Positions 2,494-63,183 of a stretch of 64,000 bases of DNA are shown in pieces. Origin of the DNA: Setoptus koraiensis (Eukaryota; Animalia; Arthropoda); contig CM106585.1 of NCBI GenBank assembly GCA_048013815.1, positions 5,456,001 to 5,520,000 on the forward strand. Direction: 5' to 3'. The position numbers and the translations under genes were made by a program. How positions within the stretch are numbered: position 1 is the stretch's first letter; each line of letters opens with the position of its first letter. The notes below the pieces were generated by a model that saw only the letters and a program-made list of their open reading frames with translations, had not been told where the DNA came from and did no database searches.

Positions 2494-5214
2494 AACGCGC
2501 GCACATCTGCCGCTACGAGGCAGGCATTATGCAGCGATGAGCAGCGAGGCGCCAGCACGGACGCCAATTTGCAAGTCGCAGTTACATAACAGTGTTACGT
2601 AACCGTGGCGACAAGTTGCGCACAGTCGCGGGTCCCGAATAACGGTGACAAACGGAGCCCAAGAGATGAATATAAATTGATACTCGATCTTGTCTGCGCG
2701 CGGGCCGTTGCCGTTGTCATTGCCGGTGTCGTCGTTGTCGTCGTTGTCGCTGTTGTCGCTGTTGTCGCCGTTGCTGCCGCTGTCGTTGCCGCTGTGGTTG
2801 TTGTCGTTGTTGCCGGTGATGGCGGTGGCTGTCGATACGTGTTTGCAGCGCGTCCATCTCATTAGATTATCGTGTCACTGCATTGGGGCGCAATCACTGT
2901 CGCGACGACAATGGCTCGCCAGTGGCGACAATAATGTTATCATAAATGAATTGTTGAGTCGGTGACACTGGCGGCTCGACACGCAAATGGGGATCACGGC
3001 GCCCCAAATCAGCCATGCACAATCTCGCTGAATTGGGGCGCCCAAACGGGATCGCAACAACGACAAACGCACCAAAACAAATGGAAACAAACGAAACGGA
3101 ATCGGCCCGAAACGAAGCCAGACGAAACGAATCGAATCGGATCAGCGATGCCACTGCCAATTGTGCCCCAATGAGGCCAACAATGAGCCGCCGCTCGGGC
3201 CACTTCCTGCCGAGCGACACACATACGCGAGACAGCGACTGGGCGACGAGTTGCGCCACGCTGAGCATGCACTCGCCAAGACGGCGCCGCCCGCTCCCAT
3301 CCGCTGTTTTATCCGCTATTTTATCCGCTATTTTATCCGCGCTCCTATTCGCGCTTTTGTGCGGCCGCCAGTGGCCGGCCGGATAAAAGCCGGGAACGAG
3401 CCGGCGGGACACACGCCAGCGCACCGACCACTGCGACCGGTGAGCCGATCATGAGCGGCCCGCTCGCCGTCTCGCCGTCTCGTTGTTTCGCTGTCCCGCT
3501 GTCGCGATGCACATCACGAACTCACCGGTATCCGGCGGTTCGGCGAGCGCGCACCCCGCGCCAATTGCGAGCCCGGCCGCACACCCTCGGGCCGCCATTG
3601 TGCCGGGCCGGTCGCCCTCAATCGCGACTGCATTCTGTGCAATTGTAGTATCATCCTGCGCACTGAGCAATGGGCTGGCATCGTTGGAGGGGGCCAAATT
3701 TGAATTGGATCACGATGACACATCGCTGTGGCGTTTCATTTTGTTTTAATGGCTGAGTAATTTCGGGCGTCTTGGCCAAATGCATTTATAAACGTGCCGG
3801 CCCGGCTGGGGCGCCCGCTCTAACACACGCACATTTGTGCGCTGTCTCGGCGCTGGCCTCGTGCCACCGCTCCGCTTGTGTCGTGCCATGTCAACTGTCA
3901 AGCGGGCCCCAATTCTAGGCCAGCGTATGGAGCCGGCCCGGCGACAATTCAATTCGCGTTCAATGGCCCCATTTGCAGCAAACCCGCGCCGGCGGTCGGC
4001 CAATGGCTGAGGCCGCAGTTGACAAGCCGCGCCAGCCGTTGGCCATGCGGCCCGCAGCGGGCCGACAAGACGCAGAAGTGTCGACTGGCCGACAGTGGGG
4101 CCTCGTTTGCGCCGCCCGTGAATTGAATAAATGACCCTGCGGCCAAGTGATCGTTAAATTAGCTCAACAGGGCTCCTTATTAGCTGCCGGCTCATTAGCG
4201 AAATCGCTGACGAGGCCGGTTTTTCCTTTCGGTGCGGGCGCCCGTTTTTCGGCCAGTCAACCGCAAGCGAGCGGTCGCCGGCTTGCGGCGTCGCCCGTTG
4301 CTCAGCTCGGTCATTTCCTAGATCGACCATCAGTGTTTCCAGAGAGATTTCCGGCTGACCGCCAGCGCGCCCCATACGAGCGACGCGCATAATTGGCAGC
4401 GGGCCCCTGTCGAAGAGGCCCACTCGCCGGCTGAATGGGCGCGCAACAATGGTCAAAGTAGGTCGGACCGGCGCGGGCCGGACTCGGACGGGCGCTGGGC
4501 CTGGCCCGGACGACAGCGAGCCGCCGTGCGGCAACGGCCATTGTGCCGCGGACTAGTCGGGCCATTATGCCGAGCGTTCGCCCCGTCGGGTGTGTGAGTG
4601 GCCGCCCATTCCCCGAGTGCGCGGTTATTTTGTTGGCGGCGCGAACTTCGTTAGAATCGGGCTGGCGAGATATTCTCAGCCACGAATGGTGGCCCGCGAT
4701 TGTTTCTGTCGCGAGCGCTGCATGTGGGCGCGCGCCGAGTCGCGGTCTCTGATTTACATAATTTCGAGCGCCGGTCGGGCAAGCGTTTTGCCCGACGACA
4801 AGTGGCGAGTTGGCAGCTCAAGTGGCGACGGGGCGCCCGATGAGGTGTCGCCAAAAACAAGAACTGGCAGCGTGTCGCTGTCACGCTGGCCACCGGGCAC
4901 GCGAGCGCCCGGGGCGCAGTTGGCGGGCGCCCGATTCGCGCTCCACGGGCCACGGGCCGCGTGCAGGGCGAGCGGCGGGCCCCACGTTGTCGTGGGGCCC
5001 ACGAGAAAAATTCAAATTTTGCGAGTTGGTGAGTTGAGATGAGTGAGTTGAGCTTGGCGAGTTTGTGCGCCCGATTGGGTTGGGATTGCCAGTCGGGCCG
5101 GCAAAAATTTGCTGGCCCGCAAAGCGCTGGCCGGCAAAAAGCCAGCCTCTGGCCCCTGGCGGCTGTGTGTGGGGGGGGGGCGTCGCTTACACCCGGCGGC
5201 GACGCGGTACATAC

Positions 5215-7345
5215 CAGACGGCGACCTTGATGCATTCGGGCACGGGCACGTCGGACTTGTTGTGCAAGTTGTCCCAAAAGGAGAATCGCTGCTGGCCCTG
5301 CTGGCCAAGCGCGGACGCGCTGAACGTTCGCGCAATCTGGCCGCTCGAGCACGAGGGCGCCATCACGTTCTTGGCCGCGCACATTAAGTGGCGCCCCCCG
5401 AACACTTGGCTGGCCTGATCACTGGGGGGCGCCACCGACGCGTCGGTGATTTGTCGTCGCGATTTGTCGCTGTTGCTGTTGTTGTTGCTGTTGTCGTTGT
5501 TGTTGCCGGTGTTGTCGGCCTGATTGATTGGTTGCTGCTGCTTGCCCGTCGACGACACTTGAGCTTGCTGTTGCTGTTGCTGCGGTTGTTGCTGTTGCTG
5601 CGGTTGTTGCTGGTCGGAAGGGGCCCCATTAGCGTAATTGCTGTTGGCGGTCACCGTCACCTTGGGCAGGCTCACCAGGCAGCAGGTGCTGCGGTTCCTG
5701 TTGGTGCGCAACTGGCTTGCCGCTTGCATGCAATCAATGGCGTCCGTCTCCACGAGCCCGTTGTGCCGCAACGCGTGCATTATGGACGCCGAGCGATTAT
5801 TATGTAATCTGGTGGCCAGACACTCGCTGCTGTTGGCCACCAGGCACTCGCCGTTTGACATAGAGGGCGCGAGCGCCGCTGCACGTGGCTGCTGCTGCTG
5901 CTGCAACTTGTCACTTCCGGTGTAGCTGCTGCCCGTTGTGCTGCTGGTGCTGGCGTTCAATTGACGATTTGAGGACAGTATCGATATTCGCTGCTGCGAC
6001 CTATTGATGTAGTGCGAATGTTTCATCGATTGGCATTGTAAGTAGACGCAACTGGAATTTGAGCAACAACTGCCCACTGTGGCGATGCCCGCCGCGGCCG
6101 AAGCCGCCGAAGCGGCCGAATTGGCAGCGCCACCAGCGCTGGTGTTTGCCGAGCCCGACGACGACACACTGGCCAGCCGGGAGCGCGCCCTGTCGGCCAT
6201 TTCGGCGCCATTGTTGGTGCCCGTCTGTTGTTGATGGTGCGGCACTAGCGGCATTAAATTATTCTGATTGTACTGCTGCTGACATTGAATGGGGCCCGCT
6301 GCCGGTAGCAGCAACTGCTGCTGATGCTGATGCTGCTGCAAATGATGCAATTGGTGCAATTGAAACAAATTGCTCGACGAGTTCGATTGGATCTTTCTAA
6401 AGGACAACTTTTGATTATTGATATTGGTTTGATTATTACTGTACAACGGCGACATGTTGCTGCCGTAAATGAGCGACCTCTGGCTGGTGCGCAAATTGCA
6501 CATGGACCTGTCGTGCGACCCGAACAATCCCGCCGCCGGCCCGGCCGCGGCCGACAACAACATTTTCTGCTTGCCAGCACCGTCGGGCGGCTCGGCGCAG
6601 CTTCCGGTGAGCGCGTCAGGCGGCTGGCCCGCTGCGTGCGAGCCAGTTGTGGGCGAAATCTGGTAGTTGATGCCCGGTTCAAGCTGGCAAGCCAGCCGGC
6701 CGCCAGAGCGCTCACTTCCGGTGCTCATAACGCTGCCGCTTAGGGTGCCCATATGCGACGACAGCGAGCTGGTCAGTTTGCTGGTGGCGGCGCTGCACGG
6801 GCTGGCCGGCTCAAGTGTTTGCATGGGGCCCAGCGGCGCGTTGACGGCCGCAAGCGTCGAGGTGAAACTTTTAACTCTGTCCCTCATTATGGCCACCACT
6901 TGATGCCGTTGATTGCGGCTGTTGTTGCCGTTGTTGTTGTTGTCGATGTTGTTGCTGCTGTTGTTGTTGGTGCTGCTGCTGTTGCTGCGGTTGTTGTTGT
7001 CGGCCGTATGGGGCGCTTCGTCGTTGAGTTGGGCCGTTTGGTCAATTGCGTCAGTCGAAATTATTGCGCCGCTGGCGCCCGTCTGGTGGACGTACTGGCA
7101 AGCTCGTGGCTGGGTGGGGGCCGACGATGCATTATTCATCGGCGATTCATTGCGAGTTTCGGCCGTTATTCGGCTGTCTATATCGCCGGTTGTGTTTCGC
7201 CGAGTCACCACTATAGTGGTGTCGTCATCGTCCGCTTGGGCGCCGCACTCAGCGGACGATTGCTGCTGGACACTGCGGCCACGCTCACGACGACAGGTGT
7301 CGCTGGCGCAATCATTCGTTGGGGCCGTGCCACTTGAAACAGTGG

Positions 7346-7380
<35 letters not shown>

Positions 7381-8498
7381 GCTACTGTGACGGTTGCAAA
7401 TTGGTGGGGCGACTTGGTGCCGCTTTCAAGAGCGCTCAATTGCGCAATTTGCGACTTTTGAGCCTGCGAGCTCGGTCTGGGCAGGGCGCCCTGCTCGGCA
7501 GCGGACCCACTGTGCGAACAAACGGACAATATGTCGCAATTGGAATTTGATGACCAGGCCGACCAGTCGGCGGACGACACCGAGCAGTTCGAGTTTGAGC
7601 TGCTCGACACGGAGGCGCCGCCGCGCGACGATTGGCTGGCAACGGATAAAAGGACGTTGTTGAGGGCCGTGGTTGAGCTCGTCTGTTGTTGTCTGGCTTG
7701 TTGGCCGCTCTTGCGTCTGCCCGCGACCGTCCGCTCGGGCTGTTCGCCGCACTGATTTTGTGCTGCGGCCCGGCGCAGCGGCCCGTCGGATTGCCCGTGG
7801 GCGTCCGTTCTAGTGGCGCCGGATATGGTCAAAAGGTGAGTTGCTGCGTGCTTTTCTTGCTGGCGCCGCTGCTGCGACTGTTGTGCGTCGTCCTGAGGGC
7901 GCTGCTGTCGCCTGCAACAACAACAACAGTTTGCGACCAATAATTGATCCGTTATTTCCGCTTTTTTGCGCTTCTCGTTGGCCGCCGCCGCGCTTCTGGT
8001 CACTAAAATTGTGCCCGTGCCGCCGGCCGTGCCCAGCTGACGGGCCGCATGGGCCGCTTGGGCCGCTTGGGCAGATTTGGCGGCCCGAGCGGTTTGTTTG
8101 TTGCTGTGGTGGCGCTGCTGTCCGGCGCTGGGGCTCGACATGGAACTGGAACTGGTGCCCAGGCTGGAGCTGGGCGTGGGCACATGGTCGTCGGTTGTCG
8201 CGGTCTGTTTGCCGCTGGCCGCTGTCCACAACAGGGGCGACAACAGGAAGCGCCTCTTTGTTTGTTTCTGCTGTTGGCTTTTGGCGGCCAAACGCCACTT
8301 GTTAATCAGCTTGCATTTACCTGGTGCGGGTGCCGCTGTCTTGCTGATGTCGCTGTTGTCGCTGTTGCCATAAACATTGTTGGCCGGTTCGGTGAGCGTG
8401 ATACTAACCAGCGCCCCCGTTTGTTTGCTGTTGGCACTATTTTTTTTCACCTGTTTTGCCTGCCTATTTACCTGGTGTTCGCTGCCGCCCAAATCCAT
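5215..8498 (-). CDS. probable dunce alternative first coding exon D (1094 codons, Q/N/S/T/A-rich, ends ...FSFWDNLHNKSDVPVPECIKVAV)
   Basis: Longest ORF in the window (3.3 kb). Phase-2 donor TG|GTATGT at 5215 and a second phase-2 donor GT|GTAAGC at 5191. The frame stays open 60 codons upstream of ATG 8498 (to 8678), so the 5' end is uncertain. Confidence 0.62.
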
Positions 8499-9999
8499 GG
8501 CCGTGCATGTTGTTGCGTTGATTGTTGCGGCCCCTTCGTTGTTGACAATGCAAGGGGGGCCCGCTGGCTCGGGCCTCTTCTTTTTCTCGTTTGGGGCTGC
8601 TGCTGTTTGGGGCTCTGACTTGGGCGCTTCACAAGCTTCACAAGGTTTGCAGTGTGAGCGTCGTCTTATTATGTTTTGCTATTTATCTTTTTATTTGTCT
8701 TATTAGTTGTCGCATTGTTTGTCGTATTTGTTATCTATTGTTTGTTGTTGTTGGTCGTCGTCGTCGTATTTATCTACTGTTTGTTGCCTAGTTTGTATTT
8801 ATTTGTCTAGCTGTGTGTCGATGTGGCTTGGGCGGGCACGCGCTGCGCTCTGACGGGGGCGCACACGGATAAAACTCTGATAAGACTCTGGTCGCACTCA
8901 TTTGCTCAACAGCATCGCTAAATGACAAAAAAAAAACAGCAACAACAGCAAACACTATGAAGTTGGCACAGGTAAACAGTGGCGCCAATCAATCAATTGT
9001 CCTCAGTGCTGCCAGTTGCGTAACGTTCACGTTCTTCACGTGCTGCGTGCGTGTGCGTGTGCCACTCACTTATTTTGGCTGTCGATTGTGTGTTTGTTTT
9101 AACTGACTTTTCTGACTGCTGCTGCTGCTGCTGTGTGCTCAGATGGTGACATCATTAGGCCCAATGGCAGGTTGTTGCCGGCGCCCAAATGTTGGGGGCG
9201 CCACGACAGCAGCAGCGCCAAGGTGACAGCAACAATCGCGCAATGTCAGACAATGGCGGCGCCTAGCGACATTGCGCACTCTCGTCGCCCCCCGTTTGCC
9301 AAATCAAGCGCATATTTAAGCCGGCCAGCTCGACAACGGTGAGCTTGCCAGTGCCGCCAGGGCGCCCCAGCGACCGGGCAAACAAACAAACGGCCAACAA
9401 CAAATAACAAACAAACAAACTGCCAGCGACCAGCAAACAAACAGCCAGCTCAATGGGGCCACCGGGACCGCACCGACAATAATCCGGGCCGCGCGCGCGC
9501 GCATCTCGAGACGGCTCGCCAGCTACAGCCCGCGCAATATCTTGCTGCTGTAGCTGGCGACACTCGAGTGGCCGCGTCGTGCCAGTGAGACTCGGATGCG
9601 TCGACGCCGGGATGCGTCGATCGCCAGCGCTCGACGGGCGCTGCCGGGCACCTTGGGGCACCTGGGGCGCTCTTGGGCACTTCTGGGCACTTTTGGGCAC
9701 GTTTGGGCACTTTTGGGCACTTTGAACGAAAATATGCTCGCATGGGCGCCAATGCGGCCGAGTCTTGCCACCAGCAACACTGCGGGCCGCTCGGGCCATA
9801 AATAAAAGCGTCGGCGGTGCCCGGCTTCGCGCTGCATGTGCACATTGTATAAGCGCTTGCTCGCCAATGCAATCGCAACAACTTGGATAAATCAAGATTT
9901 ATCCATTGTGTCGGCGCTGCAAACAGACACAAACTTTAATCACAACCTCCGCTAATGATTGGGCGATTTGTTACGTAACGTATCGCCGCGTTTTGAGAC

Positions 10000-12120
10000 A
10001 ACGCGCTCAATGACTCAACCATAGACCATGAGAGGCCCATTTTCAACTCTATCCGCCAATTCTGCATGCTGCGCCCCAATCGGCCAATCCGCTCTCTCAT
10101 CGATAGGCCGACTGACTTTTGCCGGACAAAAAGCACCAGCGCTCCGACACAGCTAACGCCATGACAGAGACAGTCGGACAGACAAAACAACCCTTTGCAG
10201 TTGGCTAAACACACTTGATTGATTTCGGGCATATTTTTGGTCTCGATCAAGGTGATCCAGTAATAAATATGATCCTCTCGTGCAGCTTGCATCAGCCTTG
10301 AGACGGCCCCATTCGCGAGCCCGATATTAAATTAAGTGCGGCCTCTTCGCCCCATTAGCTCACCATCGGCTCGCTCGCCGTCACTATTTGAGACGTTTAT
10401 GGCCGTCGCTGGGCCTATTTTTTGTGATAGCCCATTCCGTTATCATAGTTGCGGCAGCACTGCAAGTCAGCAGAAGAAAATTGTTTGCACGAAACATTTT
10501 TTTGTTACTTTTTTCGATTTCGAGATTCAAACTAGATACTGGCCATGCTTATTGGTATGCGATTCAAGGTTATTCGGATCGGTTGAAAATTTCTAAGAGT
10601 ATTCAGAAATGTTATGCTTTTTCCCCGGACAAATTCTCGCATCAACTTCATGCTCAAATTTGGTTTTTCCAGATCCAGGCGTCGGAATTTCCGATTTTTT
10701 CGATTTTTGCCGGTCAGAATGAGTTTTAGAAATTAGAAAAACCAGCAAAGCAGCCCAGAGGAAGACCTCCCGGGCGTAAGAAAGTTGGAGGTGGCGGCTC
10801 CACGGGGGGGGGGCGACCCCTACACCACCCGAAAATTCACGAATCGACTCGTTTTCTTGTTGAAACTTGTTATGGGGGAATTCGTGGAAAAATGCTTCAT
10901 TTTTCAATTGGTGACAGAGAAGGTCGCAATCGGTGTTATCGATGGAAACAAATAGCACTCAAGAGACGTATCTAGGCAGGTCTGGCTCGAGTATGAAGTT
11001 TCAAAGTCTTGCCATCAACTGAAAAATTCGGTTATCAACCGATTCTGTTATCCCTGGTTATTCTATTGGTTATCCTAGAACATAGCAATGGCGGATATCA
11101 AATGACCTAGCGGGACTTGTGCTGGTGCGATATGAAAAGGGCAGCAAACTAGCCAGCAGTGCATTTCAAGCGGCCCAAGAGGCCCAAGCGAGCTCGAAAT
11201 TGAATGATCATTTGATAGATTACCTGCCTTTATTTTGTGACGTTTAAACAAAACTGGCAGCCGGAAATCTCGGCCGTGAAAAATTGATAATGTAGTTTCC
11301 CGGCTACCGAATACTGTTTTTCGGATCGTATCCGGCCGAAATATCCGAGAAAATAGGCGACTATCCGTGAATATCCATGTGAGCTTGATATTCACGCAGA
11401 GAGCAGCAGCAATTTTCCAAGCGCACTAATTTGGGAAAAACCTGTTCCAGTTGCATTGAGATTTCACAAATTGACTCATTTCGGATATCCGTGTTTGTCT
11501 GGATAACCGGTGGCTGGACCGTTGGTCTATTTTCTATCCATGCTTGCAGATGGATACAAAATTGCTTGCTCTAATGCGAATATCGTAACATACTTTCAAG
11601 ATGCAATTAAATCTGATTTTTGTCCATATGCCATGCACGAGATTTTTTTGACAAACGATAGCCACTCAATGAGCAAAAAGCCCTTGGTGACTTGCTGAAT
11701 TTTTAAATGTTACGTCCGCTCATTTTGGATGCAAATCAGTCGCCAAACAGGCACGATTGCGGAACTGGGAAAACTTTCGGGTGACCAAACTGGGCTGTCG
11801 ATGCGGAGCTTTCTTCCGAAATAGCTTTCTTCCGTAATTTTCGTACATGTTTTAAAGGGATTCGCAGCATACATTGATGAGCAATTAGCGGTAATCATGG
11901 CCGAAACATGCAAGTGAGTGCAGTGACTCACTGTCAGTGAGATATGCAAAAGGGGATATTGCAATTTCGGGCGGACAAGCACGAATCGCAGATTTGCTGG
12001 CACCATTATCAACTTGAGAGGCCCAATTATAACATATGGTGCGATGGTGTTCGGGCAGGGGCGCCCCACAACGAGATCATTCATTGGCACGGATAACAAT
12101 ATGACATAACGGCAAACAAT
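10000..12120. mobile_element. compositionally distinct island, probable decayed DNA-transposon sequence (boundaries approximate)
   Basis: Loses the CAA and GGGCCC texture of the flanks, has A/T runs (aattt, gaaaaa) and recurrent TATCCG/TCGGAT(A) motifs at 11310-11510, and has stop-interrupted frames. No transposase motif, TIR pair or TSD identified. Confidence 0.4.
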
Positions 12121-17824: not shown

Positions 17825-18045
17825 GACGTTGATGCAGTTGCTTATCACGGTGCACACGCTCTAATATTGAGTGATCGGCGATATCAGTGGCTAATGTAGC
17901 GGTCAATTTGGTCGCAATAATGGCTCAACAAGCCTGATTGCTCTCGCAGCAGAACAGTCAGGGACATCGCTGGCAAGTCACTCAATAATGGATCATTTGC
18001 CACTGCTAGTCTCGTCATTTTTGGCACGGGCCGCTCTGAACAAAC

Positions 18046-18184
18046 TCCAGCGAATATCCAGCGAATATCCAGTGAATATCCAGCGAATATCCAGCGAATA
18101 TCCAGTGAATATCCAGTGAATATCCGGTGAATATCCAGTGAATATCCAGTGAATATCCAGTGAATATCCAGTGAATATCCGGTG
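18046..18184. repeat. 11-bp minisatellite (GAATATCCAGY), ~12 copies
   Basis: Direct tandem units with no spacers. Confidence 0.92.
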
Positions 18185-19575
18185 ATTTCCACCTCAACAC
18201 TTCTGTCATTCATGATTTATCGCTGGATCATCGTTTCAGCGAGATACGAGCAATATTTACATGCGAGACTGGACAGTTGTTGCTGCAATTATCGCCTCAC
18301 CGACTGAACCGACAAACCGACAAACCGATTGTGAACCGATCGAAGGGCTGACTGGCGGCGAGAAATCTCTCGAGCCGACGCTGGTCACGAGATTGACTGT
18401 AATTGTGGCGCAATTAAGCGCAACAACAGGCGCCGGTCAGTCGATCAACATTCACACGCGAGGCATCGTCTGGCGTGCCGAGATCCGACGAGTAGCGCGT
18501 GCGATTCGAATCGCATCGTCTGGCCGACACGAGTCGCATCGAGCTCGAACTGGGGGCCGACCGTTCGGCTGGCACCGACGATTGTATATGGGTTTGCGTT
18601 GGGGCGCCGCTGTGCGCGTCGGTCAGTCGCCGCGGACGATCGACTCGATTGAGTGGATAGGCACGGATATTCGCAATAGCAACATTCATAATGGTGGTAA
18701 TATTCGTAATATCAGTATTCACGATATCAGTAATGTTCACAATATCAGTAATATTCACAATGTCAGTATTCACAATGTCGGTATTCACAATATTGGCATC
18801 TTTAGTACGTCTGTGCGCCCCGAACCGAACAACCGGCAACGATAATAAGTGGACGGCAGTGCGTGCCGCAACACGAGCAGACAAAACACGCGCTCGTGAA
18901 TAATGTGTGAATATCAATTATATTTAGCTTGCCGGATGATTGGTTGGGCGCTGCAGTCGCATTTGGATTGCGCGATTCGCAACGAAGCGCCCCCTCAGAT
19001 TATCTGGCATTGCGAAATGGACGACAGTTGCTTGTCGGCAGTGGCCGGCGAGCATTTTCAAATCGGTCGGTTGTCGCACAATAAATCACGGGCTTACCAC
19101 CGGACACACAGGAACAGAGTATTAAAATTCACATTTTGATGTGATTCGTGCACGCGCCCGCCAGTCGCACCATCTCGCCGGCACGTAACACGTGCCGGCG
19201 AGTAGTATTTCATAATGGTCGACGGCGTTGACACAAACTGTTGGCTTGACATTGTCGCCTCAATTGATCGGTTGTTCGCGTTGCTCGGCCGACAAGTCGC
19301 CGCTTGTCTTAGGCGGCCTAAGTTGGGCCGCCGCAATTTTATAACTTGTTTTGTAAGCGGCCCATGCATGCACGATTTCCGCCGCTCCACTTCCGGCTAC
19401 ACCTATCCGCGGGCGTGCGTGCCGCCGGCCAGCCGACCATTTGGCCGACCGACTGTTCGACCGACTGGCCGACCGACTGTTCGACCGACTGACCGACCGA
19501 CGGACACGAAAATGGAAACTGTTTGATGCGAGCGACGGCCCCAAAATAAGCTGTGTGTTTGTGGCGGGCGCCACA

Positions 19576-22416: not shown

Positions 22417-22454
<38 letters not shown>

Positions 22455-23371
22455 GCAACCACCTCTGAACAACAACAACCGCTGACGGCCAGCAGGTCTG
22501 TTTGTGACACGGCACAGCTAGGGGCGGGTGTCGCGGGCTTGCCGCTCAATTGCTCGTCGCTGCCCGTCGCTTGATCGCCGGCCGGCGCAAGCGGAACCCG
22601 GAAAATATTATTATCACTGATTGTCAACGGAAACGGGCCGGCGCCGCCACAGCCCGGACTCGTGGGCGTGCTACTCAGCGACTGGGCGCCGCTGTAACAC
22701 TGCTGCTGCTGCGGCTGCTGGCCGTTAGGGCGCGCAGCCATTCTAAATCTAAAAAAGCACATAGGGTCGGAACAGACGGGCGTGGTCGCTAGGCACTGTT
22801 GTCGCTTTAGGTTGTTCGGGTTGGTGTCGCCGCTGTCCAGCTCCAACTGCAATCTCGGCTCGTCCCGGTAGGCGGCGCTGGCGCTAACGGTGGCGTTGGT
22901 GGAGCTGGTGTCGGTGTCGGTGTCGTCGGCGTTGCTGCTGCTGCTGTCGTCGAGCTGACCGAGCTGTTCTCTCATTTTGGACTGTTGCTGTTGCTGGTAA
23001 AGCTGCTGACAGAGGGCACAATCCGCTCGGGCAAAGGTGGTGCCACTATCGAAATCCTCGTGACTATTCGCACTGTTCCGGTTGTGCGCCCCGAACAGCT
23101 GACCAGAGGAATACCTGTCGTGGTTGTTGGCGGCCCCGACCAGGCCCGTGCCGCTCGACGAGCGCTGGTATTTGTAGCCGCACATGGGCGCGTCCAGGCC
23201 GCCGCCGCTGCTGCTGCCCAGGGTATTTGTGGTGCGAAATCTGATTGGCGAGTGCTGTCTAGCGCGGTGGCTACTGGCAAAAGGACTGGTTGCGTCATTT
23301 AGGCCGCCGCCGCACTGCAACTGATTGTGGCCGCCCGAGCTGGCGCTAGCGCTGGCCCGCCTCCTAAACAT
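21726..23371 (-). CDS. probable dunce alternative first coding exon C (548 codons, MFRRRASAS..., polyQ, ends ...SHSPSRFNFG)
   Basis: gccATG with an in-frame TAG five codons upstream. Perfect donor GG|GTAAGT, phase 2, the same phase as the UCR1 exon donor. No recognisable domain, so gene assignment is inference. Confidence 0.62.
21830..21910 (-). repeat. CAA/CAG trinucleotide tract encoding polyglutamine in exon C (one of many coding polyQ/N/T tracts in exons A-D)
   Basis: Translates to a Q run of about 20 residues in the exon frame. Confidence 0.85.
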
Positions 23372-25094: not shown

Positions 25095-27353
25095 CCTGGC
25101 GCCTCACGCGCCGTGAGCGCCCTCCGTCTCGCCGCCGTCGATCTCGGCGCGCTGCTAAGCTCGGCGCTGCAGTTGTTGTTTCGTTGTTGCTGCAGTTGTT
25201 GCTGCAGTTGTTGCTGCAGTTGCTGCTGCTGTTGTTGTTGTCGTTGTTGCTGCTGTTGTTGTTGTCGCTGCGGCAGTTGTTGTTGATTTTGTCGTTGTTG
25301 TCGGTCGGCCGGGCCGGGCCGCGCCGCGCCGCCCGACCGTACACACAATAAACTAAACGCAATAAAATAAACGAGTGCTCGACAACGGATGAGCGGAGCC
25401 GCGAACTCAATGAGCAGTGACTAACATCCATGCACTTGTCGCAACCGAGCAAATGGAAAAGCCCGACAAGTGCACGGTGCGACTTTCACCTGACGCGCTG
25501 CTCACTTGATGACTTTGCACGCCAAACCGCTCTCGCCTTGCACCAAACGGAGCCGCACTAAACGGAGCTGCACCAAGCGGAGCTGCACCGAACGGAGCTG
25601 CACCTAACGGAGCCCATGCAAAGCGAGCCGAGCGAGCAAAGTTGCCCGTTGTCAAAGTGTGACTTTGGGGCCGCTCCGTTGCCACAAAGTCGCCAGCTCG
25701 ACAAACAACGGCTCGCCGATTGCGCAACTTGCGTTTAGGGGGCCGCAAAAAATTGCACCATCACTAAGTAAATATGTGCCGACAACAACAGACAGCGCGG
25801 TCGTTTGCGCCCCCGTTTGCGCCATCATCGGCCGCATCTGTGCGCTCTGCGCCACTCTGCGCCACTCGGCGCCACGAGATGATTTAGCGACAGGCGGACC
25901 TAGCGACTGGCGCAGCCAGCGACTAGACGATCCGGAGGCACGGAGCGAGGGCGCAGAGCGAGGGGCACAGAACGGAGGGCGCAGAACGAGGGGCCCGCGA
26001 CTGTCTCGCCTTGTTGCGCTCGGGGCTCGATCGAACGGCTCGATCGCTCAATTGCCCGGCCGCTCGTTTGACGGGCGCACACAAATGGCACCGCGCGACC
26101 GCGTCGGGCGCGAGGCGTATGCCGGGCGCCGGGGGTGGCCGACCGACAGCTCGGCGGCCCACAAACTGTCGCCGGGTCTGTCTACGGGCGGCTGCACCAT
26201 TAGCGCTAGCGACAAACGAGACGCGAATCACTTATGCGGCCCATATTCATGCATGGGGTTACACATTGAGGGCCGCACTGCAAAATCGCGCAACATTGTC
26301 TCGACAAATGATGATTCATTGCGTCATAGCTTGTGTCACGTCAAGACGTTTTCGGCGCTTTAAACTGTGTGCTAAACTTGAGACTCTCACAAACTGTAAA
26401 ACACCTTGTTGTGATGTTCGGTTTGTGTGCACAATTGTTGTCAATGACGACGACTGTACTGACGCAATAATTTATCGCTAATAGACAAACGAAAGCGCCA
26501 AAAGCCGAGCAAATCCAGACACCCCAGCGGCATAATTAATTTGCGCGCGGCACAAGCCGCCGATGCTAATAAATAATGACGGCGCCCGGCGCTCACGGTT
26601 GCATAATGACACATAATAATAATGTGATGCTCGCTAATGATCGCCGCGTACGACATGATACGCAACGCAATGTGACGTAATCTGACGTAATGTGGTGCGC
26701 GATTGCGCCGCCAGTTGCCACAAGCGCGACATTATCGGCACAACCGATCGACTTGTGTCAGTGCGGCTGGCGGGGCAGCGTCACTGTCGCCACTCATGGC
26801 CGACTTGTCGGCCGAGAAACCGGGGCCCGCCGACCGGAAGTGCGGCCGACCCGATGCACGGCCAACCGGAAGCAGACGGGCAGCGCGAAACGCAGACCGA
26901 GAACAAAACAAAGCGCGTCACAGGTGCACGCTGAAAGGGCCGAGAGAGGGCGCACAGCGAGCGAATAACAAGTTGAACGGGTTTAGACGGGCGTAGAGTT
27001 AGCTTTTTAGTGTGATTTTGGTTTGACAGTTATTTGTGTCGGCGCAATACGCCAGTCGCGTTGGTGTGTAAACCTCACCACTAACAAGATTTTAGCTTGT
27101 AAGATTTGTCCGCTAGGTGACGGTGAAAACAGAAAAAAAAACGGCCGCTCCGATGCGGCAAATATGATGAATGGTGAGTGAAGCGTCGGAATGACCGGAT
27201 AAAACTAGATTTTGTCCGGCCAACTTGTTAGCCATTGCTGAAATAGGCGATAGGGGGCGCGTCGTCGGTTGTGTGCAATTGATCCCTGTGTATCAAGTGT
27301 GTGTGTGCCATTAGGCGCCTGTCACTAATGGTGTTAGTGTGTCACTAATGTGG

Positions 27354-28250
27354 TCACTTGTTGTCTGGCGGCTTGTCGGCTAGGCGGCGCTGCTCTAATT
27401 CGCGTTTGTAATTGGTCAAGAAAATATCACAATATTTTGGTGGCTCCTCCAGCTGCTGATAGAGGTCGCTGGTGGCGGCGCCGCTGAATGTGTCCTGCTG
27501 CAATTGTTTGGCATTCAGCGTCACAAACTGGGCACCGGCCGTTGTTGTGTTTGCAGTGGTTGTTGTTGTGGTTGTTGGGGTTGTTGGGTTGGTTGTGGTG
27601 GCGCTGCTGTTGCTGCAATATCCGGCCGGCCACAAGTGACAAGTGGCCTGGCTGGCCATGTGACTAGTGCTACTTCCGGCGTTGCAAGGATGCAACAGGA
27701 GCCAGGCGAGCGGACTCTTGGTGAGCGCCTCATCGTAATTGGGCGGCTTGTCCTCCATTGAGAACGATATGGAGCATATGCTTGGCGTTCTTGCCAGTCG
27801 GCGGTTGCCAGCTGCTTGTTGGCCCACTTCCGGTGCAGCAAGTTGACTAGCGTTTATGTGGTTATTATTGTTTGTTGTTGCACCATTATTGGCGGCATGG
27901 TGCAAGCTGCGATGATGCTGCTGCTGCTGCTGGTGAGTGCGGCGCAAATTAATTCTAAACTCGTTTGCGGTGGCCTGTAAATGCTGATTCAGATCGAGCT
28001 GACCGTTGTGGCCGGAGTCGAGCGGGTCGCTATAGTCGGTGTCGTCATAGTTGGTGTTGTTGTTCTTGAATTTTCGCTCTTGCAACAGCCACACAACGCT
28101 CAATAGGAGACACGATGTGGTGAAGCCAAACAAAACGGACAAAAACGCTTTCACTTCGTTCAAAAGCAATGTATTTAAATGGCTACTACACAGACCGAGC
28201 GCGATCAATACGTAGGCTAAAACAATTGCACTTGTCCATGTCAGATTCAT
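27354..28250 (-). CDS. nested single-exon gene: predicted membrane protein (N-terminal hydrophobic segment, TM helix, cytoplasmic tail with PPNY and PPKY motifs), 298 aa
   Basis: In-frame TAG upstream of ATG, with A at -3. Hydrophobic segments SAIVLAYVLIALGLCS and FLSVLFGFTTSCLLLSVVWLL are followed by basic QERKFK. PY motifs are EDKPPNYDEAL and EEPPKYCDIF. The ORF has its own TGA. Confidence 0.68.
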   Translation of the reverse strand: MNLTWTSAIVLAYVLIALGLCSSHLNTLLLNEVKAFLSVLFGFTTSCLLLSVVWLLQERKFKNNNTNYDDTDYSDPLDSGHNGQLDLNQHLQATANEFRINLRRTHQQQQQHHRSLHHAANNGATTNNNNHINASQLAAPEVGQQAAGNRRLARTPSICSISFSMEDKPPNYDEALTKSPLAWLLLHPCNAGSSTSHMASQATCHLWPAGYCSNSSATTTNPTTPTTTTTTTANTTTAGAQFVTLNAKQLQQDTFSGAATSDLYQQLEEPPKYCDIFLTNYKRELEQRRLADKPPDNK

Positions 28251-32225: not shown

Positions 32226-32414
32226 CATTCGCTTCCTATTGAGGAGTGGCGCGATACGGTCTTTGGCGATGTCTCAAAATCGTTGTCGCTTCTGTAAAGG
32301 AATGACTCGCGCCTCGTCTGTGGCTCGCGCAATATCAATCCGGTGGAGGGACTTCCTGTTGCGTCGAGCATGTTTGCTCTGTTTTGTTGATTGTGCGGAT
32401 TATCACTGTCCAAG
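32226..32414 (-). CDS. dnc: PDE4/dunce internal exon encoding N-terminal UCR1 with the PKA site (LDSDN...SPSTGLILREPQTRRESFLYRSDNDFETSPKTVSRHSSIGSE)
   Basis: Close match to the PDE4 consensus FDVxNG...SPxxGLxL...RRESFLYRSDSDxxxSPKxMSRNSS. Acceptor ...accgcag|C at 32414 and donor TG|GTAAG at 32226. Length 189 nt, phase 2-2. The polypyrimidine tract is weak. Confidence 0.93.
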
Positions 32415-54871: not shown

Positions 54872-54874
54872 CGC

Positions 54875-54964: not shown

Positions 54965-54967
<3 letters not shown>

Positions 54968-57181
54968 CGGAGGCGCCCTCATGCGTAGCGCCATCTCATT
55001 TAATTACGCAAGAGTTGGTCGTAATGGCGATACACTTTTTGCTTGTCAGCGCAACACACACACACACACACATGCAAACACACACAAATATGATGATGAT
55101 ATTTGGAGAATATGCAAATTAGGCCCGTGTGCGCATCGCCCAATTTGGATACGTCACGCGGCGGTGCGCGGCTGTCGTCGCATTTATCAGCGCGCGCGCG
55201 GCTGGGGCGCCCACTTTGGGGGCGCGCTGACGATTTTGCGCTTGTGTGTGTGTGTGCCGGTCGCCTAGCGACGGCAAATAAGCGCGCGCGCGGGCCCACC
55301 AAACAATTGAGCCGCCTCGGCGTGAGCGGTGCGCGGGCCCGGCAAGAGTGGCGGCGGCGGCGGCGCGGGCCTGTTGAGCGGCGCGGGCTCGTTAGCAATT
55401 TGTCGCTAACGAGCCCGCGTCGCCGCCCAGATTGACGCGGCGGCCGAGATTGATGCGGCGGACGCGCCAAGCGACCAGCCAGCCGACAAGTCGCAATCAG
55501 CGCAATCGCCTGCACCTACAGTCTCCAGAGGCCAGAGAGCAGAGGGGTCAGCGAGAACGGGCGCAATTCAAATTCAAATTTATGCAAGAACAAGATAAGT
55601 TGTTGCGCAACGTTTCATTGTTTGCATCACGCGCGACCGCGCTCGCATTACGTAACGTGTTTCACCTGTGCGCTGCTGAGACTGCCTCAAACTGTGCGCT
55701 GTTGAGACTCGCTCAGACTGTGCGCACCGGTAATATGCGATGATAATGTGCAAATTGCAATGTAACTGTTGGCGCTTCCATCTTTCCGGCTGGCCGTGGC
55801 CGTTGTCGCTGTTGTTGTCGCTGCTGTTGTTGCTGCTGCTGTTGTCGCTGTTGTTGCTGTTGTTGATGCTGCTGTCGCTGTTGTTGCTGTTGTTGATGCT
55901 GCCGTCGTGGTTGTTTTCATATTTTGTGTTGTGTTCATTGTATGCAAATCAGACTTGGCCTGCCTGCCAAGGTTACTGCGGCTCACGCTGCGCAAAACAC
56001 TTGTGTTATCACAAGAGTGTATTATTACGCAATGGCACTTTTGTGTAAAGTGCTGCAAACAACAACAGCGCAAACAAACAAACACCGAAAAGCGCGACCA
56101 TCCAGCAAGACGTGCTGTCGCGGTTGTCGCTGTTGTTGCCGTTGTTGCTGTTGTTGCTGCTGCTGTCGCTGTTGTTGGCGTCGCGGTTGTTGCTGTCGAT
56201 GTGGCGGTTGTTGTGGCGGTTGTTGTGGCGGTTGTTGCTGCTGTCGTATATAGGCGCCGCAAGCCAATAATTGTGTTAATTCTATTGATGCTGCCTACTC
56301 GTCGCCGGCGCATTTTATTTCCATTCATTTTATTTTGTTTCGTTGTGTTTTATGTTCTTCCATGTTTCTCGTGTAATAACACACACAAATACACGCTTTT
56401 GTTGCGCTCTCTCTCTCTCTCGGGCTGCGACGAGTCTAGCCGCGACACAGCCAGCCTGTACTCACGCAAACAATGCATGACGAACAACAACATGACATGA
56501 GCTCGACAGCGAAACAATGCCAGCCAATTCGATTGCCAGCCCCAAGGCCGTTCCTTCGGTCTTGCCAGCCTCGCCAGTCTTGCCAGCCTCGCCAGCCTTG
56601 CCGGTGTGTCGCACGATGATCAGTTCGACAGGTGAGCTCGCCATTGGATCACCTGTCGGCGCGGGCCGACATGGGTGCGGGTTGGCTTGCTGGGCGGCCG
56701 CCCGCGACCCGTCGCGGGCCGTCTCGAATCATCTAGACTCCAGACTGTAGATTCGCGAGCCGTCTCGAGCCGTCGCGAGCCGCCGTGAGCCGCCGCCACT
56801 CGCGAGCTACCTGATCCGGCCGCCAGGTTGCTAGTCGTTCATGTTTCACGCTGCGCAGCCATTTGTTTGTGAGCGCCGGCTGTGGCCGTTTGCTGTCAAC
56901 TGACATTACGACTGATATCAACGGCGCGCCAATAACATTATCTAATATTAACGCTACACAAGCGCACACACGCACACCGACACATACGCACACGTACACC
57001 GACACACACGCACACGTACACCGACACCGACACACACGCACACACGACACACTAATCCATATAGATGACCCGATGCGCGCAACGTTGTTACGCAATGCAT
57101 CATCACAAACAACACGGCGGCACGTATTGCGGCGATTAGCGGCGCGACGTTGGCGCGCTGCGCGGCCCACCTGTGCACACC

Positions 57182-57297
57182 AATCATATGTGCACATGGA
57201 TCATATGCGCTAGCGGATCATATGTGCACGTGGATCATATGCGCACGCGGATCATAGGTGCACACGGATCATATGCGCACATGTATTATATGTGCAC
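57182..57297. repeat. ~19-bp degenerate repeat of GGATCATATGYGCAC with internal palindromes
   Basis: About six units containing CATATG and GTGCAC/TGCGCA. Confidence 0.75.
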
Positions 57298-59385
57298 AGG
57301 TGAGGTGCACACAGCGTGCCAGTACACAAACACTGGGTGGCGGGGTGCACTGCCGTTGCCGCACAGACTTGGCACGCCGCACCGCGGCGTTTGGGGCGCG
57401 GACTCGTGCGCCGCCGGCGAGCTCGCCGAGCGGCTGGTCGGCACACGATGCGACGGCTTGTGTCGACCGGCGGCGCGGCGCGCCAAAATCTGGCGCTCTG
57501 TGCCGAAATCTGGTGCGGCGCGCCAAAATCCGGCGAGACCGGCCCGACTGGATGCGACCAGATATGCGGCGAGAGACGCGGCTAGACGCTGGCTGGGTGC
57601 CGACTGGGCGCCGGCTGGATGCTGGCGACGGCAAAGTAAATTTGCCGTTGGTGCTGCCGTTGTTTGAAGTTGTACAAGTTTGAATGATGACGATTTTCGT
57701 TCAGCGATGCTTATTTTTGGTGGCGCCGCTGTTATGTAACTATGCGTATATAATCCGTCAGTGTAAATAAACAATTGATTGATGATGTGTCACGGCACAG
57801 CAACAACAACAACAACAACTTGCAGTTGTTGTTGCAGCCATTTGGTAGCTGCTAACGGCGGCGCGTTAGATGGAAATGTGCATGCCGCGTGAATAGTAGA
57901 AAAGCGCTATGGGCCGCGCAAACTAATATTGTGAGATCATTGATAAAAGCTGCCTGCCCGGCTGACTTATCTATTTAATGGCAAGCTCGCTCGTCTCGTC
58001 TCGCCCTGCTCAGCTCGCTGTGCGCTGTCGGGTTGTGCGAGCTGAGCGAGCCAACTAATGAACAGCAGCCAAGAGCTGGCGAGCGAGCCAAAGCCCCGGC
58101 GGATCGGATCGGATAAACCGGAGCGCGCAAACAAATGCAAGCAAATGCAGCGAATCAACGCACACACACACACGTCGCCGGGTCCCGCAACCGAAAACCC
58201 GGCAGCCAGCTAACGCGCGGCTCTCGGGCTGCCATTAGACGGCGGCCCGAGATTAGCTGTCTGATTTATCTCGCTCCGTTTGACTAATCAAAGTTAGCGG
58301 CTCGGCTGCCGAGTTGCCACGCTGCCAGTTATACTTTGTTGTTGAGTTACACTTTGTTGAGTTACACTTTGGGGGCCAGACGGGCGATGCGGGCTCCGCA
58401 GGCCGCTGCTGGCAGCTAGCTGGCGCTCAAGCCAGCAGCTCAAGATTAGCCCGTTACGTAATGGCGCCCGGTTGGCGCCACCGTTAGCTGGCTGTTTTCA
58501 ACGCGACAGCGGTACAGTGGTGGTTGGCGTGGTTGTTGCCGTTGTTGCCGTTGCTGCCGTTGTTGCCGTTGTTGGCGTTGTTGCCGTTGTTGCCGTTGCT
58601 GCGCCTGTCACGACAGCGCCGACAACAACAGCTGATCACCTGTTGGGATCGTCTGGCAGTTCGCGTGGGCACGCTCAGGTGCCCCAGCACCCAGGTGGCG
58701 CTAGTTGGCGTGTAGGAGCTAGAATGGCAACAATGGCAAACGGGCCCCAGTGCCAGTAATTGGCCGTCTCGCCAACCAACAATCAGCGCGCTCTGTCGGG
58801 CAAATATTTGCCCACGTGGATGAGGGCCCCACTTCCTGTTGGCGGAACGGGCACGCTCGCTGACAGTGTGTGTGTGTGTGTGTGTGTGTGTTAACAATTG
58901 CGCTGTATATGTATAATATATGTACAGCGTCGTATATTATGTAACGCACGACGGTGTACATATAATATGTAATTTGGCGATGGTATTTAGCGATACAGCT
59001 ACACAAAAACAACAGTGGCAGCTTCTTGGCGCCGTTTTTTGTCGGCCGTCGTTTACCTTTCTCGTGGCTGCCAATCACAAATGACGCAATCGCATATATC
59101 GCGCATCTATTGCGCAATAAATGATAAACACACACACACTGCCTCCCTCCCCCCAATGCAATACAATACAATGCAATGTTGTTGTGCAACTCGATTGTTG
59201 TTTGGATTGTTTGGCGATTGAAAAAATCAGTGCCGCCAATGATTGATCACCGCTGATCTATTGCGCACGCAATTATTAGACCACCGGCGGCTCGCTTACC
59301 TGGCCAGCTCAGCTGGCGAGCTTTGGGCTCGCCGTGGGCTCGCCATGGGCTCGTGTTGCTCACGCTGCCCACACGGCAACAACCG

Positions 59386-59497
59386 GCCAACAACCGGCAA
59401 CAACCGGCCAACAACCGGCAACAACCGGCCAACAACCGGCAACAACCGCCAACAACCGGCCAACAACCGAGAAACAACCGAGCAACAACCGGCCAAC
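59386..59497. repeat. 9/12-bp tandem repeat (CAACAACCGGC)
   Basis: Direct tandem units. Confidence 0.85.
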
Positions 59498-60316
59498 AAG
59501 CGCCACATTTGGCCAGGTACCGGCGCTGCGTTACGTCAAGCTGTGTGAGCGATTGGCCCGAACTGTGTGAGAATAAACAAACAAGTGCACAAACAAACAA
59601 ACAAACAAACGAAGCGCCCAGCTCGGCTGGCATTACGACTCAAGGTCAAGCGGCCGGCAGGCCAACAATTACCAGTGGCCGATCTCGGCCCGCAATCTGG
59701 CCGGCAGAGGGCGGCCGGCACTGTTAACCGGCCGCCCGATGCGGCGGAATCAATCAATCGCCGTCAGACTGTGATGAGCAAAGTGCAATCACGGCCACTG
59801 CCCACTTGATTTCGTCTCAAGTTTCCGAAAAGTTGGCGCCGGCACAGCCCGTCATTTGGTGCCCCCATTGGCCTCTTTGCACAGCTTTGTGCGGCTGAAT
59901 CTCGGCCATACACAGCGCAAAAAGGGGCCCCCATAAACAAGGCCGAATCTTGCCAATCTGGGCCCCTTTTATCGGGGCCCAGATTGGGCGCTCTTTTTAT
60001 CGAGGCCAAGATTGGGGCCCGACAATAAAGGGGGGCCAAATGGGCCAATCACGTGCTACACGTGCCGGCCGGTGTTATGTAACTCGACAATTGGGTCTGT
60101 TTGTTTGAACAATGGTGTTTGTCTTGATCGGCGGCTCGAGTGGCTCGCTTCTAGGCTATGTGTGACCACTAGAGTGGCTTGTATAGCTCGTGTGTAACTA
60201 TTGTGTGTGGCCAAAGTGGCCAGACGGCTCTAGATGGGTCTGAATGGGTCTGTATGAGTCTGTATGGGTCTGGATGGGTCTAGATGGGTCTTGATAGACC
60301 GTGGGGGGGTTATTAC

Positions 60317-63183
60317 CTGCAGATCCAGGAGTGTCGCCGACGGGGTATGGTGCAATTGGGCAGACTGAGCAGGATGGCGGAAGTTTTCATTTTTTTCTGA
60401 TTTGTATTTGCCGCCAAAAGCTGCCTCTGATACAATTGGTACGATTGTTTGTTGAAGCATGCGCCCGCAATGGCACCGAGGGCGCTGCTGTCTTGCTGTT
60501 TGGCGTGTTGTTGCTGCTGTTGTTGTTGCTGTTGTTGTTGCTGCTGTTGTTGCTGTTGTTGTTCGGGTTGACACAAGTCTGGCTGCTCATTGGTATGCAT
60601 GACTTTCGGTTGTTGCGGTTGTTGGGGCTGCTCCACGAGCGTGGCTATTGTGCCCTGATTGGTGGTGACGTCGTTACATAAGAGGCATTTCTTCAAGTGA
60701 CAAATGCAAAAGCTGATGCTCTCGCTGCGCACCTTGTTACTTATCGAGCGCTGTGGTTGTTGTTGTTGTTGTTGTTGCTGTTGTTGTTGTTGCTGTTGCA
60801 GGCTAATTTGCATTTTTGTCGCCGATGACGCGGCCGATATGATTTTGGGCGTCACGCCGATGGTCGACTCGATTGCATTAATGAGCGTCGCATTGATTAG
60901 GTCCGGATGATCCAATTGCTGTATTGGGTGGCTGTGTCTCGTCTGCCTTCTGGCCTGGCTGCTCGACGCGCCGCTCGCCGATTGCGAGCTCCACGCCGAC
61001 CGACTGTGCGCCGTCGGGCCGCCACCCGACAATTGCCCGCGACAATGGGCCGCCGATGACGCCACCTCTGACACTTGACAGACTTGATTGTTGCTGTTGT
61101 TGCCGCTGTTGTTGCTCGGCTTGCTGTTGCTGCTGTTGTTGCCGCTGTTGTTGCTGTTGGTGTCGCTGTTGGTGTTGTCTAGTTTGCTGTCGTTGTTGGC
61201 TGTTCGGCTGCTGTTGGCACCGCTGACGTCGTTGTTTGTTTGTTGCTTGCTTGTGGCGTCGGCACGCAATTCCATGCCGCAAGCCGGCATCAGCTCGTCG
61301 TGCCGGCCCGAACAGCTTACATCGGCGCTGCCAACAGCTGTTGCCGGCGTGCCCGTCACGATTACGCAAGCGACACGCTGACCGTCTTGTCCCGCCGCCG
61401 CCGCCGGCGTGCTCGCTCGCTGCCCAACAGCTGATTGGGCGCAGCCAGCCAGTTGGCCTTCTTGGGCTCTGCTTGTCGCCGTTGTTGTCGCTGCGGTTGC
61501 TGTTGTTGCTGCGGGTGCTGTTGTTGCTGCGGGTGCTGTTGTTGCTGCTGTGGTTGTCGCAAGTGTCACACTGCGTCTGCCGTCACTTGTCCGGCAACCG
61601 CTGATCGGGCTCGCCTGATCGTTGTTTGCGCCACGGCCATTTTCGGGCGGGCACGACGGACCGCTTGCGGCCGCTGCGCTGGCCCGCTGTCCGCTCTGGC
61701 TCGGGCCGGCACTTGATTGATCCGTTCTCACTTGATCCGCGCTCGCCATGGCATCTTGCTGTTGTTCGCACGATAGTTGCGCCCCTGTCACCACCGACGA
61801 TGCACGATCTGTATCTGGCCGCTGCTGGCCCCTGTCTGCCGGCTGGCCCGCTGGGGCCCAGCTCACCTGTGCTGGCCGGTGCTGTCGCAGCGGCGCAGTC
61901 GGTCTGTTGGGGGCGTCGCTGCACTGGCTCGCTGACTGTGGCCCCATTTTGTGCGCCCCTAATTGCGCCTCATTATGCGCCGGCCGCCCGACGTTGTCCG
62001 CTAATTGGGGCCGTCGCATCCGCTCTTGTTGTGTCGGTTGTTGTTGCTGCTGTTGCTGATGTTGCTGTTTTTGCTGTTTTTGTTGTTGTTGGGCCGTCTT
62101 GGTGCCGCTCGCTTGTTGACATGCTCCATCATCCCTATTATCTCTATTACCTCTAATACCCCCGCTGTCCGCATCAAGCCCGGCACGCCCATCGCCCCCG
62201 TCGCGGCCACTGTCTCTGTCGGGCTTGTTGGTGTCCGTCGGGGCTGCCGCTACGTTGTGCTGCTTTGTTGTCTTTTGTTTCAATTGGCTCAGTTGCGTCT
62301 TCAACTGTCTCAACTGTTTTGCTGGCGCCAAATTGTTGCATCTGCCGCTCTCAGTCTCACCTGGCGAGCTCGCGGACCCGGCCGGCTGGCCGGCGCCCAA
62401 CTGGCTCAGGATCGCCTTCAGCGGGGACCCGACGAGGGCGTGCCTGGGCTTGGCTTTGGGGCCCGGTGGCGGGCCGGCGCCGCCCGTCTCTTCGGTCATG
62501 GGATTTTGGCTGGCGATTCTTTTCTGCGTGTCGCTGCTTGTATTGTTGTTGCTGCTGTGATTGTTGCTGCGCGTTCGGTTGGCCTCAAAATTGATGGCGT
62601 CGAAACTGGACGACAATTGACTTGCCTGCGTGGCGCCCTCTCTGGCGATGACACTGCTCACACTGTTCGATCGGGCCACTTCTGGCAGCTTGTCGTCGAC
62701 TGGTCGCCGGTGAGCCGAGGGGGCGCCACCGACCGGGCCGGACAAATGCGTCGCTGCGAGCGGTCGCTTGAGGTCGCGTTTCCGTTTTGGTTTGTCGGGT
62801 TGTTGCGGTTTTTCTGTCGGTTTTTCTGTCGGTTTGTCTGTCGGTTTGTGCGTCGGTTTGTGCGTCGGTTTGTCCGTCGGTTTGTCTGTGGGTTTGCGTG
62901 GCGGTTCGCCGAGTTGTGGCTCGATTGGCAAGTTAATTTGAGCGTTTTGCAACTGTTTCGAGTGTTCGTTTGAGTCGTTGTTTTGGAGCGCGAATTGCGC
63001 GTCTTGCACGTTTTGCACATATGCCCGCTTGTCGGGCACAACACTGTTACTGTTTGCTGTGTCTGTTTGGTGACTGTGCTGCGCACTGTGCTGGCGACAA
63101 TGATGCTGCGCCGCGCCAAACTTGTTCATCATCGGCTTCTCTGATGATGATGGCTGCCACAGCTTGCCCATAGCTCCTCCCAT
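60317..63183 (-). CDS. dnc: dunce alternative first coding exon A (955 codons, Q/N/S/T-rich, ends ...SLPNCTIPRRRHSWIC)
   Basis: In-frame TAG just upstream of ATG 63183. RRHSWIC is identical to the end of the human PDE4D3 unique N-terminus. The ORF stop lies inside the donor AG|GTAATA. Phase 2 joins 32414 in frame (..WICS-LDSDN). Confidence 0.85.

Follow-up and report, generated by a model that had tools for sequence, protein, structure and literature searches.

Long candidate alternative first exons in a PDE4 (dunce-type) gene of the eriophyoid mite Setoptus koraiensis

We analysed a stretch of 64,000 nucleotides from the eriophyoid mite Setoptus koraiensis (assembly GCA_048013815.1, contig CM106585.1, positions 5,456,001 to 5,520,000 of the forward strand), hereafter the window, together with its flanks; positions are counted from the first letter of the window. 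Judged from the exon matches in and beyond it, the window sits within the single PDE4 (dunce-type) gene of this mite, on the minus strand. When the assembly was searched, PDEase_I was matched 12.7 kb beyond the window start, on the strand that also carries the long open reading frames (ORFs) described below, and the catalytic exons match PF00233 at 8.6e-69. Among solved structures, searched in PDB, the catalytic exon was closest to human PDE4A, PDE4B and PDE4D (E ~1e-96), with PDE1 (PDE1B, 3e-39) far behind, which identifies the gene as a genuine PDE4 orthologue rather than a member of another PDE family. The UCR1b, UCR2 and catalytic exons lie on one strand and in canonical order, 2.5–15 kb beyond the window start. 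The first of these, UCR1b (HGEDLIVTPFAQILASLRNV...), is the next exon after UCR1a; it has a pyrimidine-rich phase-2 acceptor 2.5 kb beyond the window start and a donor AG/GTGAGT (the slash marks the splice site), and matches positions 1–25 of the PF18100 (PDE4_UCR) profile at 1.4e-8. Positions 49–118 of the same profile are matched at 1.3e-28 by the UCR2 exon (flank piece L011, 362–604). A constitutive exon of 469 codons (flank piece L014, 2807–4216, minus strand) comprises LR2 and the beginning of the catalytic domain; its linker, ~380 residues rich in poly-Q, poly-H and poly-T, means that the shared PDE4 core is itself greatly enlarged by low complexity. Altogether, the PDE4 locus spans roughly 90 kb, with introns of 10–28 kb. 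The best-looking acceptor of UCR2, ttcccag/CAA (L011, 600–720), is in phase 0, and the donors of UCR1b and of ORF E, a frame of the same flank described below, are in phase 2; either a small linker exon is absent from our model or a weaker acceptor within the CAA/CAG run is used.

Within the window, the constitutive UCR1a exon occupies positions 32226–32414 on the minus strand (189 nt, phase 2 at both ends), with an acceptor ccgcag/C and a donor TG/GTAAGT. Its translation, LDSDNPHNQQ...QTRRESFLYRSDNDFETSPKTVSRHSSIGSE, includes the PKA site RRESF and the beginning of UCR1, and the UCR1 PKA-site stretch RRESFLYRSDNDFETSPK was found in it. Its motif RRESFLYRSD..SPK is the one that opens UCR1 in PDE4, as in human PDE4D3; the 62-aa exon by itself gave no Pfam match. 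The initial annotation of the window had described a true UCR1 exon surrounded by four ORFs, and we could read both the splice sites and the PKA-site motif of this exon.

The four ORFs, here called A to D, all lie on the minus strand. ORF A runs from its ATG at 63183 to 60317 (955 codons plus 2 nt, donor AG/GTAATA) and ORF B from 34479 to 33728 (250 codons plus 2 nt, donor GG/GTAATG), UCR1a being located between ORFs B and C. ORF C extends from its ATG at 23371 to 21726 (548 codons plus 2 nt) and ends at a perfect donor, GG/GTAAGT, and ORF D runs from 8498 to 5215 (1094 codons plus 2 nt, donor TG/GTATGT), with a second donor, GT/GTAAGC, that moves the exon end to 5191 (1102 codons plus 2 nt). 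All the coordinates and codon counts of the initial annotation (955, 250, 548 and 1094 codons) were reproduced, and its description of phase-2 GT donors with the ORF stop inside them was seen for A to D, in D at the 5191 donor. In each of the four, the terminating TAA consists of bases +2 to +4 of a GTAA donor. A TAA in this position is the obligatory look of a phase-2 exon that runs into GTAA.

The overhangs left by these donors match what the PDE4 exons require. The donors of A and B, which lie upstream of UCR1a, supply the two bases needed by the acceptor at 32414. ORFs C and D, located between UCR1a and UCR1b, carry a two-base overhang identical to that of the UCR1a donor and fit the UCR1b acceptor, and the first donor of D recreates a TG+T codon, as happens at the UCR1a donor. 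ORF A terminates in ...KTSAILLSLPNCTIPRRRHSWIC, its last residues being TIPRRRHSWIC, followed by S-LDSDN across the predicted UCR1a junction. In human PDE4D3, residues 1–14 are MMHVNNFPFRRHSW; this N-terminus ends in ...FPFRRHSW, and RRHSW closes that first exon. Both the position and the motif of a PDE4D3-type first exon thus appear to be conserved in ORF A, and RRHSW at its end suggests that at least the 3' end of A is tied to PDE4. Taking these sequence features together, we read A, C and D, and less surely B, as protein-coding 5' exons of PDE4, each likely with its own promoter and initiator ATG, and give this reading a probability of about 0.6.

Donor-like endings are concentrated in these frames. 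The 104 kb around the window contain 101 open frames with a length of 150 codons or more; six of these end in G/TAA, five of them being A to D and ORF E. Under a looser definition of a donor-like ending, about 10% of the open frames qualify on either strand. The enrichment of donor endings among the longest ORFs is real. It bears on the alternative that the frames are independent genes nested in PDE4 introns, which would encode stand-alone low-complexity proteins with their own TAA stops, the donor context being coincidental. Drosophila dunce hosts nested genes, and in the mite a 298-codon membrane-protein-like ORF that lacks a donor occupies the same intron space (27354–28250). However, five out of five long ORFs end in G/GTAA, as against about 1 in 96 of the open frames outside A to E, all ORFs lie on the PDE4 strand in the phase required by the next PDE4 exon, A ends in a PDE4-specific motif, and the codon style of the ORFs is that of the PDE4 core rather than that typical of the genome's genes. 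We therefore consider nested genes very unlikely.

Three of the four frames, A, C and D, also carry a coding signal. Over A, C and D, each of the other five frames contains 9–32 stops, and the probability of an open frame, computed from the stop rate of the remaining two frames on the same strand, is 3e-11 for A, 1.5e-7 for C and 2e-14 for D. Frame-specific codon models were trained on two independent references, either 30 kinase genes of the same genome or the conserved PDE4 core only. The ORF frame won 15–17 of the 20 windows in A, 10 of 11 in C with both models and 15–22 of 23 in D; in B, the result was reference-dependent, with one of four windows won under the kinase model and all four under the PDE4-core model. 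The 30 kinase genes favour A/T-ending codons and the PDE4 core is rich in G or C at third codon positions (GC3, 61%). All six ORFs A to F (F lies upstream of the window) and the LR2 exon share the codon style of the core, with GGC, AAC, GAC, AGC and CGC preferred and T at 11–14% of third positions, and the GC content of the introns is 46%, unlike the GC3-rich ORFs. The difference between PDE4 core and ORFs (GC3 ~61–71%) on one side and the kinase genes on the other is a marked contrast within one genome.

These data can be set against a more modest account, in which translation is confined to a short stretch at the 3' end of each ORF (such as MKTSAILLSLPNCTIPRRRHSWIC in A), the rest being 5' untranslated region (UTR) or recently expanded low-complexity DNA, and B is perhaps noncoding. 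The PDE4D3-specific N-terminus of humans is indeed only ~15 residues long and has the same end motif, no homologues were found for the ORFs, low-complexity trinucleotide DNA is abundant in the genome and in the introns, and the statistics of B are weak. Untranslated DNA, however, would not keep 550–1100 codons open while the five other frames accumulate 9–32 stops, high complexity is found in about half to two thirds of the 40-residue windows of A, C and D, and the codon signal follows the frame along the whole ORF length. We regard translation of a short piece alone as unlikely; by codon use and stop statistics, almost the entire length of A, C and D looks coding, and B is the weakest first-exon candidate.

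The 5' ends of the frames bear on whether they begin transcripts or lie inside them. The first ATG is found at codon 3 of the stop-to-stop frame in A, 7 in B, 6 in C, 61 in D, 36 in E and 15 in F, which is earlier than expected if Met were placed at random (combined p ~0.04), as fits initiator codons behind a 5'UTR with random stops. Upstream of A, C and D, the sequence is rich in A or in A and T; TATA-like stretches lie ~70 nt before A and ~100 nt before C, the latter consisting of (TA)6 with a GAGA run. A scan for core-promoter motifs was not decisive and gave nothing clear upstream of B or D. If some of the ORFs were internal or cassette PDE4 exons rather than first exons, the products would be longer proteins or would carry insertions inside UCR1, along routes such as F to A, or from UCR1a through C and/or D to UCR1b. 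Reading frame would be kept along all of these, since phase 2 is shared by every donor and by the acceptors of UCR1a and UCR1b, and in D and E the open frame upstream of the first ATG runs for 60 and 35 codons, respectively. Against this, only 3–7 codons separate the first ATG of A, B and C from the beginning of the frame, inspection of the A-/AT-rich sequences preceding A, C and D revealed no pyrimidine tract plus AG, and PDE4 genes elsewhere use comparable exons as first exons. Cassette use is thus quite unlikely, in our judgement, and a position at the start of PDE4 transcripts is the reading that we carry forward.

If the ORFs are first exons, A and B would join in frame to the PKA-site exon UCR1a at the acceptor 32414. 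Exons C and D would skip UCR1a and join UCR1b, ~2.5 kb beyond the window start, and the C/D isoforms would lack the RRESF PKA site and keep the whole Pfam PDE4_UCR module. The upstream ORF F, and ORF E between UCR1b and UCR2, would follow the same scheme. PDE4 would then be made as a series of isoforms with one catalytic core in common and with different long, lineage-specific, probably disordered N-termini rich in Q, S, A, T and N, which, by analogy with mammalian PDE4 and Drosophila Dunce, would set the location and the partners of the enzyme. The initial annotation had proposed alternative PDE4 first exons, and this proposal is partly supported, by the PDE4 locus itself, the donor and acceptor phases, RRHSW in A and the coding signal of A, C and D; its weak part is B. 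For A, C and D, the intrinsic evidence supports this gene structure well; for B, its support is weak. A bolder version, in which the ~90 kb locus has been kept for six promoter-specific isoforms of ~1,500–2,500 residues, whose orphan Q/N/S/T-rich N-termini would bring cAMP hydrolysis into condensates or onto large scaffolds instead of short docking peptides, including a C/D class with the full UCR module that lacks the PKA site, is doubtful, and we give it little credence. The placement of cAMP hydrolysis in condensates or on scaffolds is pure inference.

Several points weigh against this first-exon scheme. Splicing, promoters and translation of the full ORFs are deduced from genomic sequence. 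The donors of A and B (GTAATA and GTAATG) deviate from the GTRAGT of the five constitutive donors that were seen. ORF B is statistically weak, with a probability of an open frame of only 6e-3 and an alternative frame that contains a single stop. Trinucleotide low-complexity patches also occur within the PDE4 introns, outside the ORFs. Searches for homologues returned none for ORF A (the whole ORF and residues 885–956 in word-indexed searches, and ESM Atlas), for residues 1–500 of ORF C (word-indexed search) or for ORF D (phmmer against 1.84 billion representative proteins), although low-complexity candidates swamped the word-indexed searches and length windows restricted them, which makes a blank there weak. 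Given that no homologues were found, evolution offers no test of coding. The structure predictions considered below were run with AlphaFold2 in the absence of an alignment, and a low predicted local distance difference test (pLDDT) score obtained in this way is weak evidence for disorder.

The predicted N-termini are mutually unrelated, as the initial annotation had stated: in blastp comparisons among the ORFs, no pair scored better than E = 0.9. None of the ORFs A to F matched a Pfam family. Their composition is rich in Q, S, A, T and N (Q+N 18–22%), with poly-Q runs of up to 21 that are encoded by mixed CAA/CAG codons, and order-promoting residues make up 14–18% of the ORFs versus 31% of the catalytic domain. 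Composition is very low in complexity in ORF B (Q 21%, T 14%), whereas about half to two thirds of the 40-residue windows in A, C and D count as high-complexity. A crude FoldIndex-type score was negative overall, and AlphaFold2 returned almost pure coil with few short helices and one hairpin (mean pLDDT 31 for D and 34 for A). The N-termini are thus probably intrinsically disordered, as composition and prediction suggest; of the arguments for the disorder claimed in the initial annotation, composition, the FoldIndex-type score and the AlphaFold2 coil agree with it, and the weak part is the pLDDT from alignment-free runs. Some short motifs may serve as leads only: MGGAMGK at the start of A, which fits a generic N-myristoylation pattern, RRRAS at the start of C, which begins MFRRRASAS, and a CCCCC run at residues 191–195 of D.

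The genomic setting makes the size of the locus stand out and the low complexity less so. The assembly holds 48,755,295 bp in two sequences, the larger of 24,533,333 bp, and the published S. koraiensis assembly is described as two chromosomes with an N50 of 24.53 Mb, 47 Mb in total and 5,954 genes, annotated without RNA-seq. Most kinase domains lie in uninterrupted open frames, as expected for the intron-poor eriophyoids; in the related eriophyoid Aculops lycopersici, 84% of genes have no intron, and introns have a median length of 170 bp. With introns of 10–28 kb, the PDE4 locus is an outlier in an intron-poor genome. Low complexity, by comparison, is a genome-wide habit and not special to these exons: across the assembly, (CAR)10 tracts are matched about 19,000 times, with overlapping matches counted, and the flanks of the kinase domains are rich in S, N, T and Q. 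The claim that such N-termini are unusual has to be moderated accordingly: dunce already has unique N-termini, and low complexity is found throughout the genome and in LR2.

Alternative PDE4 first exons are already established in mammals and in Drosophila dunce. Descriptions of dunce give it several promoters and at least eight transcripts, with isoforms in five classes that are distinguished by unique N-termini and by UCR1/UCR2 content, with N-termini that give differing subcellular localisation (Qiu & Davis 1993; Ruppert et al. 2017). The mite locus resembles dunce as an arthropod PDE4 gene with a very long locus and candidate multiple first exons. It differs in that the candidate N-terminal ORFs reach 955–1094 codons in the window and 1450 outside it and have no detectable homologues, and in that the host genome is streamlined (48.8 Mb, most genes intronless). 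The longest fly dunce isoforms have ~1,200 residues in total.

Mammalian PDE4A–D comprise long, short, super-short and dead-short classes, in which isoform-specific N-terminal exons are spliced to one core. The likeness to the mite lies in ORF A, which ends with the RRHSW motif of the PDE4D3 exon and is followed by an exon that holds the RRESF PKA site. The unique exon of PDE4D3, at ~15 residues, is far shorter than the mite ORFs, and the predicted C/D isoforms, whose N-termini would come in after the PKA-site exon and before the UCR1 helix, fall outside the four mammalian classes. Other unique N-terminal exons of mammalian PDE4 range from tens to hundreds of residues. The ORFs also resemble Q/N-rich prion-like domains in their Q+N content (18–22%), poly-Q of up to 21, few order-promoting residues (14–18%) and little predicted secondary structure, but they are as rich in S, A and T as in Q and N, and similar tracts occur genome-wide and in LR2.

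Three features would be new here: how large the candidate N-termini are, that they are orphans, and that a streamlined genome has retained them. A candidate C/D class that lacks the PKA-site exon comes in addition. The N-termini of PDE4 isoforms are the textbook case of one enzyme sent to different cAMP compartments. If the scheme is true, this design would be seen at an extreme, with N-termini two to four times the length of the conserved enzyme, and selection would be retaining introns of 10–28 kb and multiple promoters at this locus in a lineage that is mostly stripped of introns. The scheme also predicts an isoform type with an intact UCR module and no PKA site. For now, the locus is an annotation-level curiosity, and its low complexity looks genome-wide.

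Two further long ORFs lie in the flanks. ORF F, at window-equivalent positions 70577–74929 (L013, 577–4929) on the minus strand, is 7–11 kb upstream of the window end and, with 1450 codons (1461 from stop to stop), is longer than any ORF of the window. It is of low complexity and ends at a perfect phase-2 donor, CG/GTGAGT; by these features it is probably the most upstream alternative first exon of PDE4. ORF E (L011, 2933–4344, ~5.7–7.1 kb beyond the window start, minus strand) has 471 codons and a phase-2 donor AG/GTAATG. Its location between the UCR1b and UCR2 exons makes it a candidate first exon of isoforms that would lack UCR1. A run of N is present at L011 5700–6200, in the intron between UCR1b and ORF E.

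The 298-codon ORF at 27354–28250, on the minus strand in a PDE4 intron, has two hydrophobic segments near its N-terminus and the motifs PPNY and PPKY. No donor was found at its end and it had no Pfam match; it is a possible same-strand nested gene. Ten other intronic ORFs likewise gave no match in Pfam, and no structured RNAs or tRNAs were found in the introns. Low-complexity patches of the CAA/CAG/GAC type, in the minus-strand sense, are located at 2680–2850, 25150–25330 and 55763–56230 and hold ORFs of 150–220 codons; these may represent additional short exons, 5'UTRs or coding sequence that has decayed. A transposon or repeat origin of the ORFs was rejected, the only repeats in the window being trinucleotide low complexity and one minisatellite with an 11-nt unit. 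This minisatellite (18013–18210), in the intron between C and D, consists of ~18 copies of TCCAGYGAATA. The downstream boundary of the gene is probably marked by a plus-strand open frame (L014, 20–439) with a resemblance to a proteasome alpha subunit, located shortly after the 3' end of PDE4.

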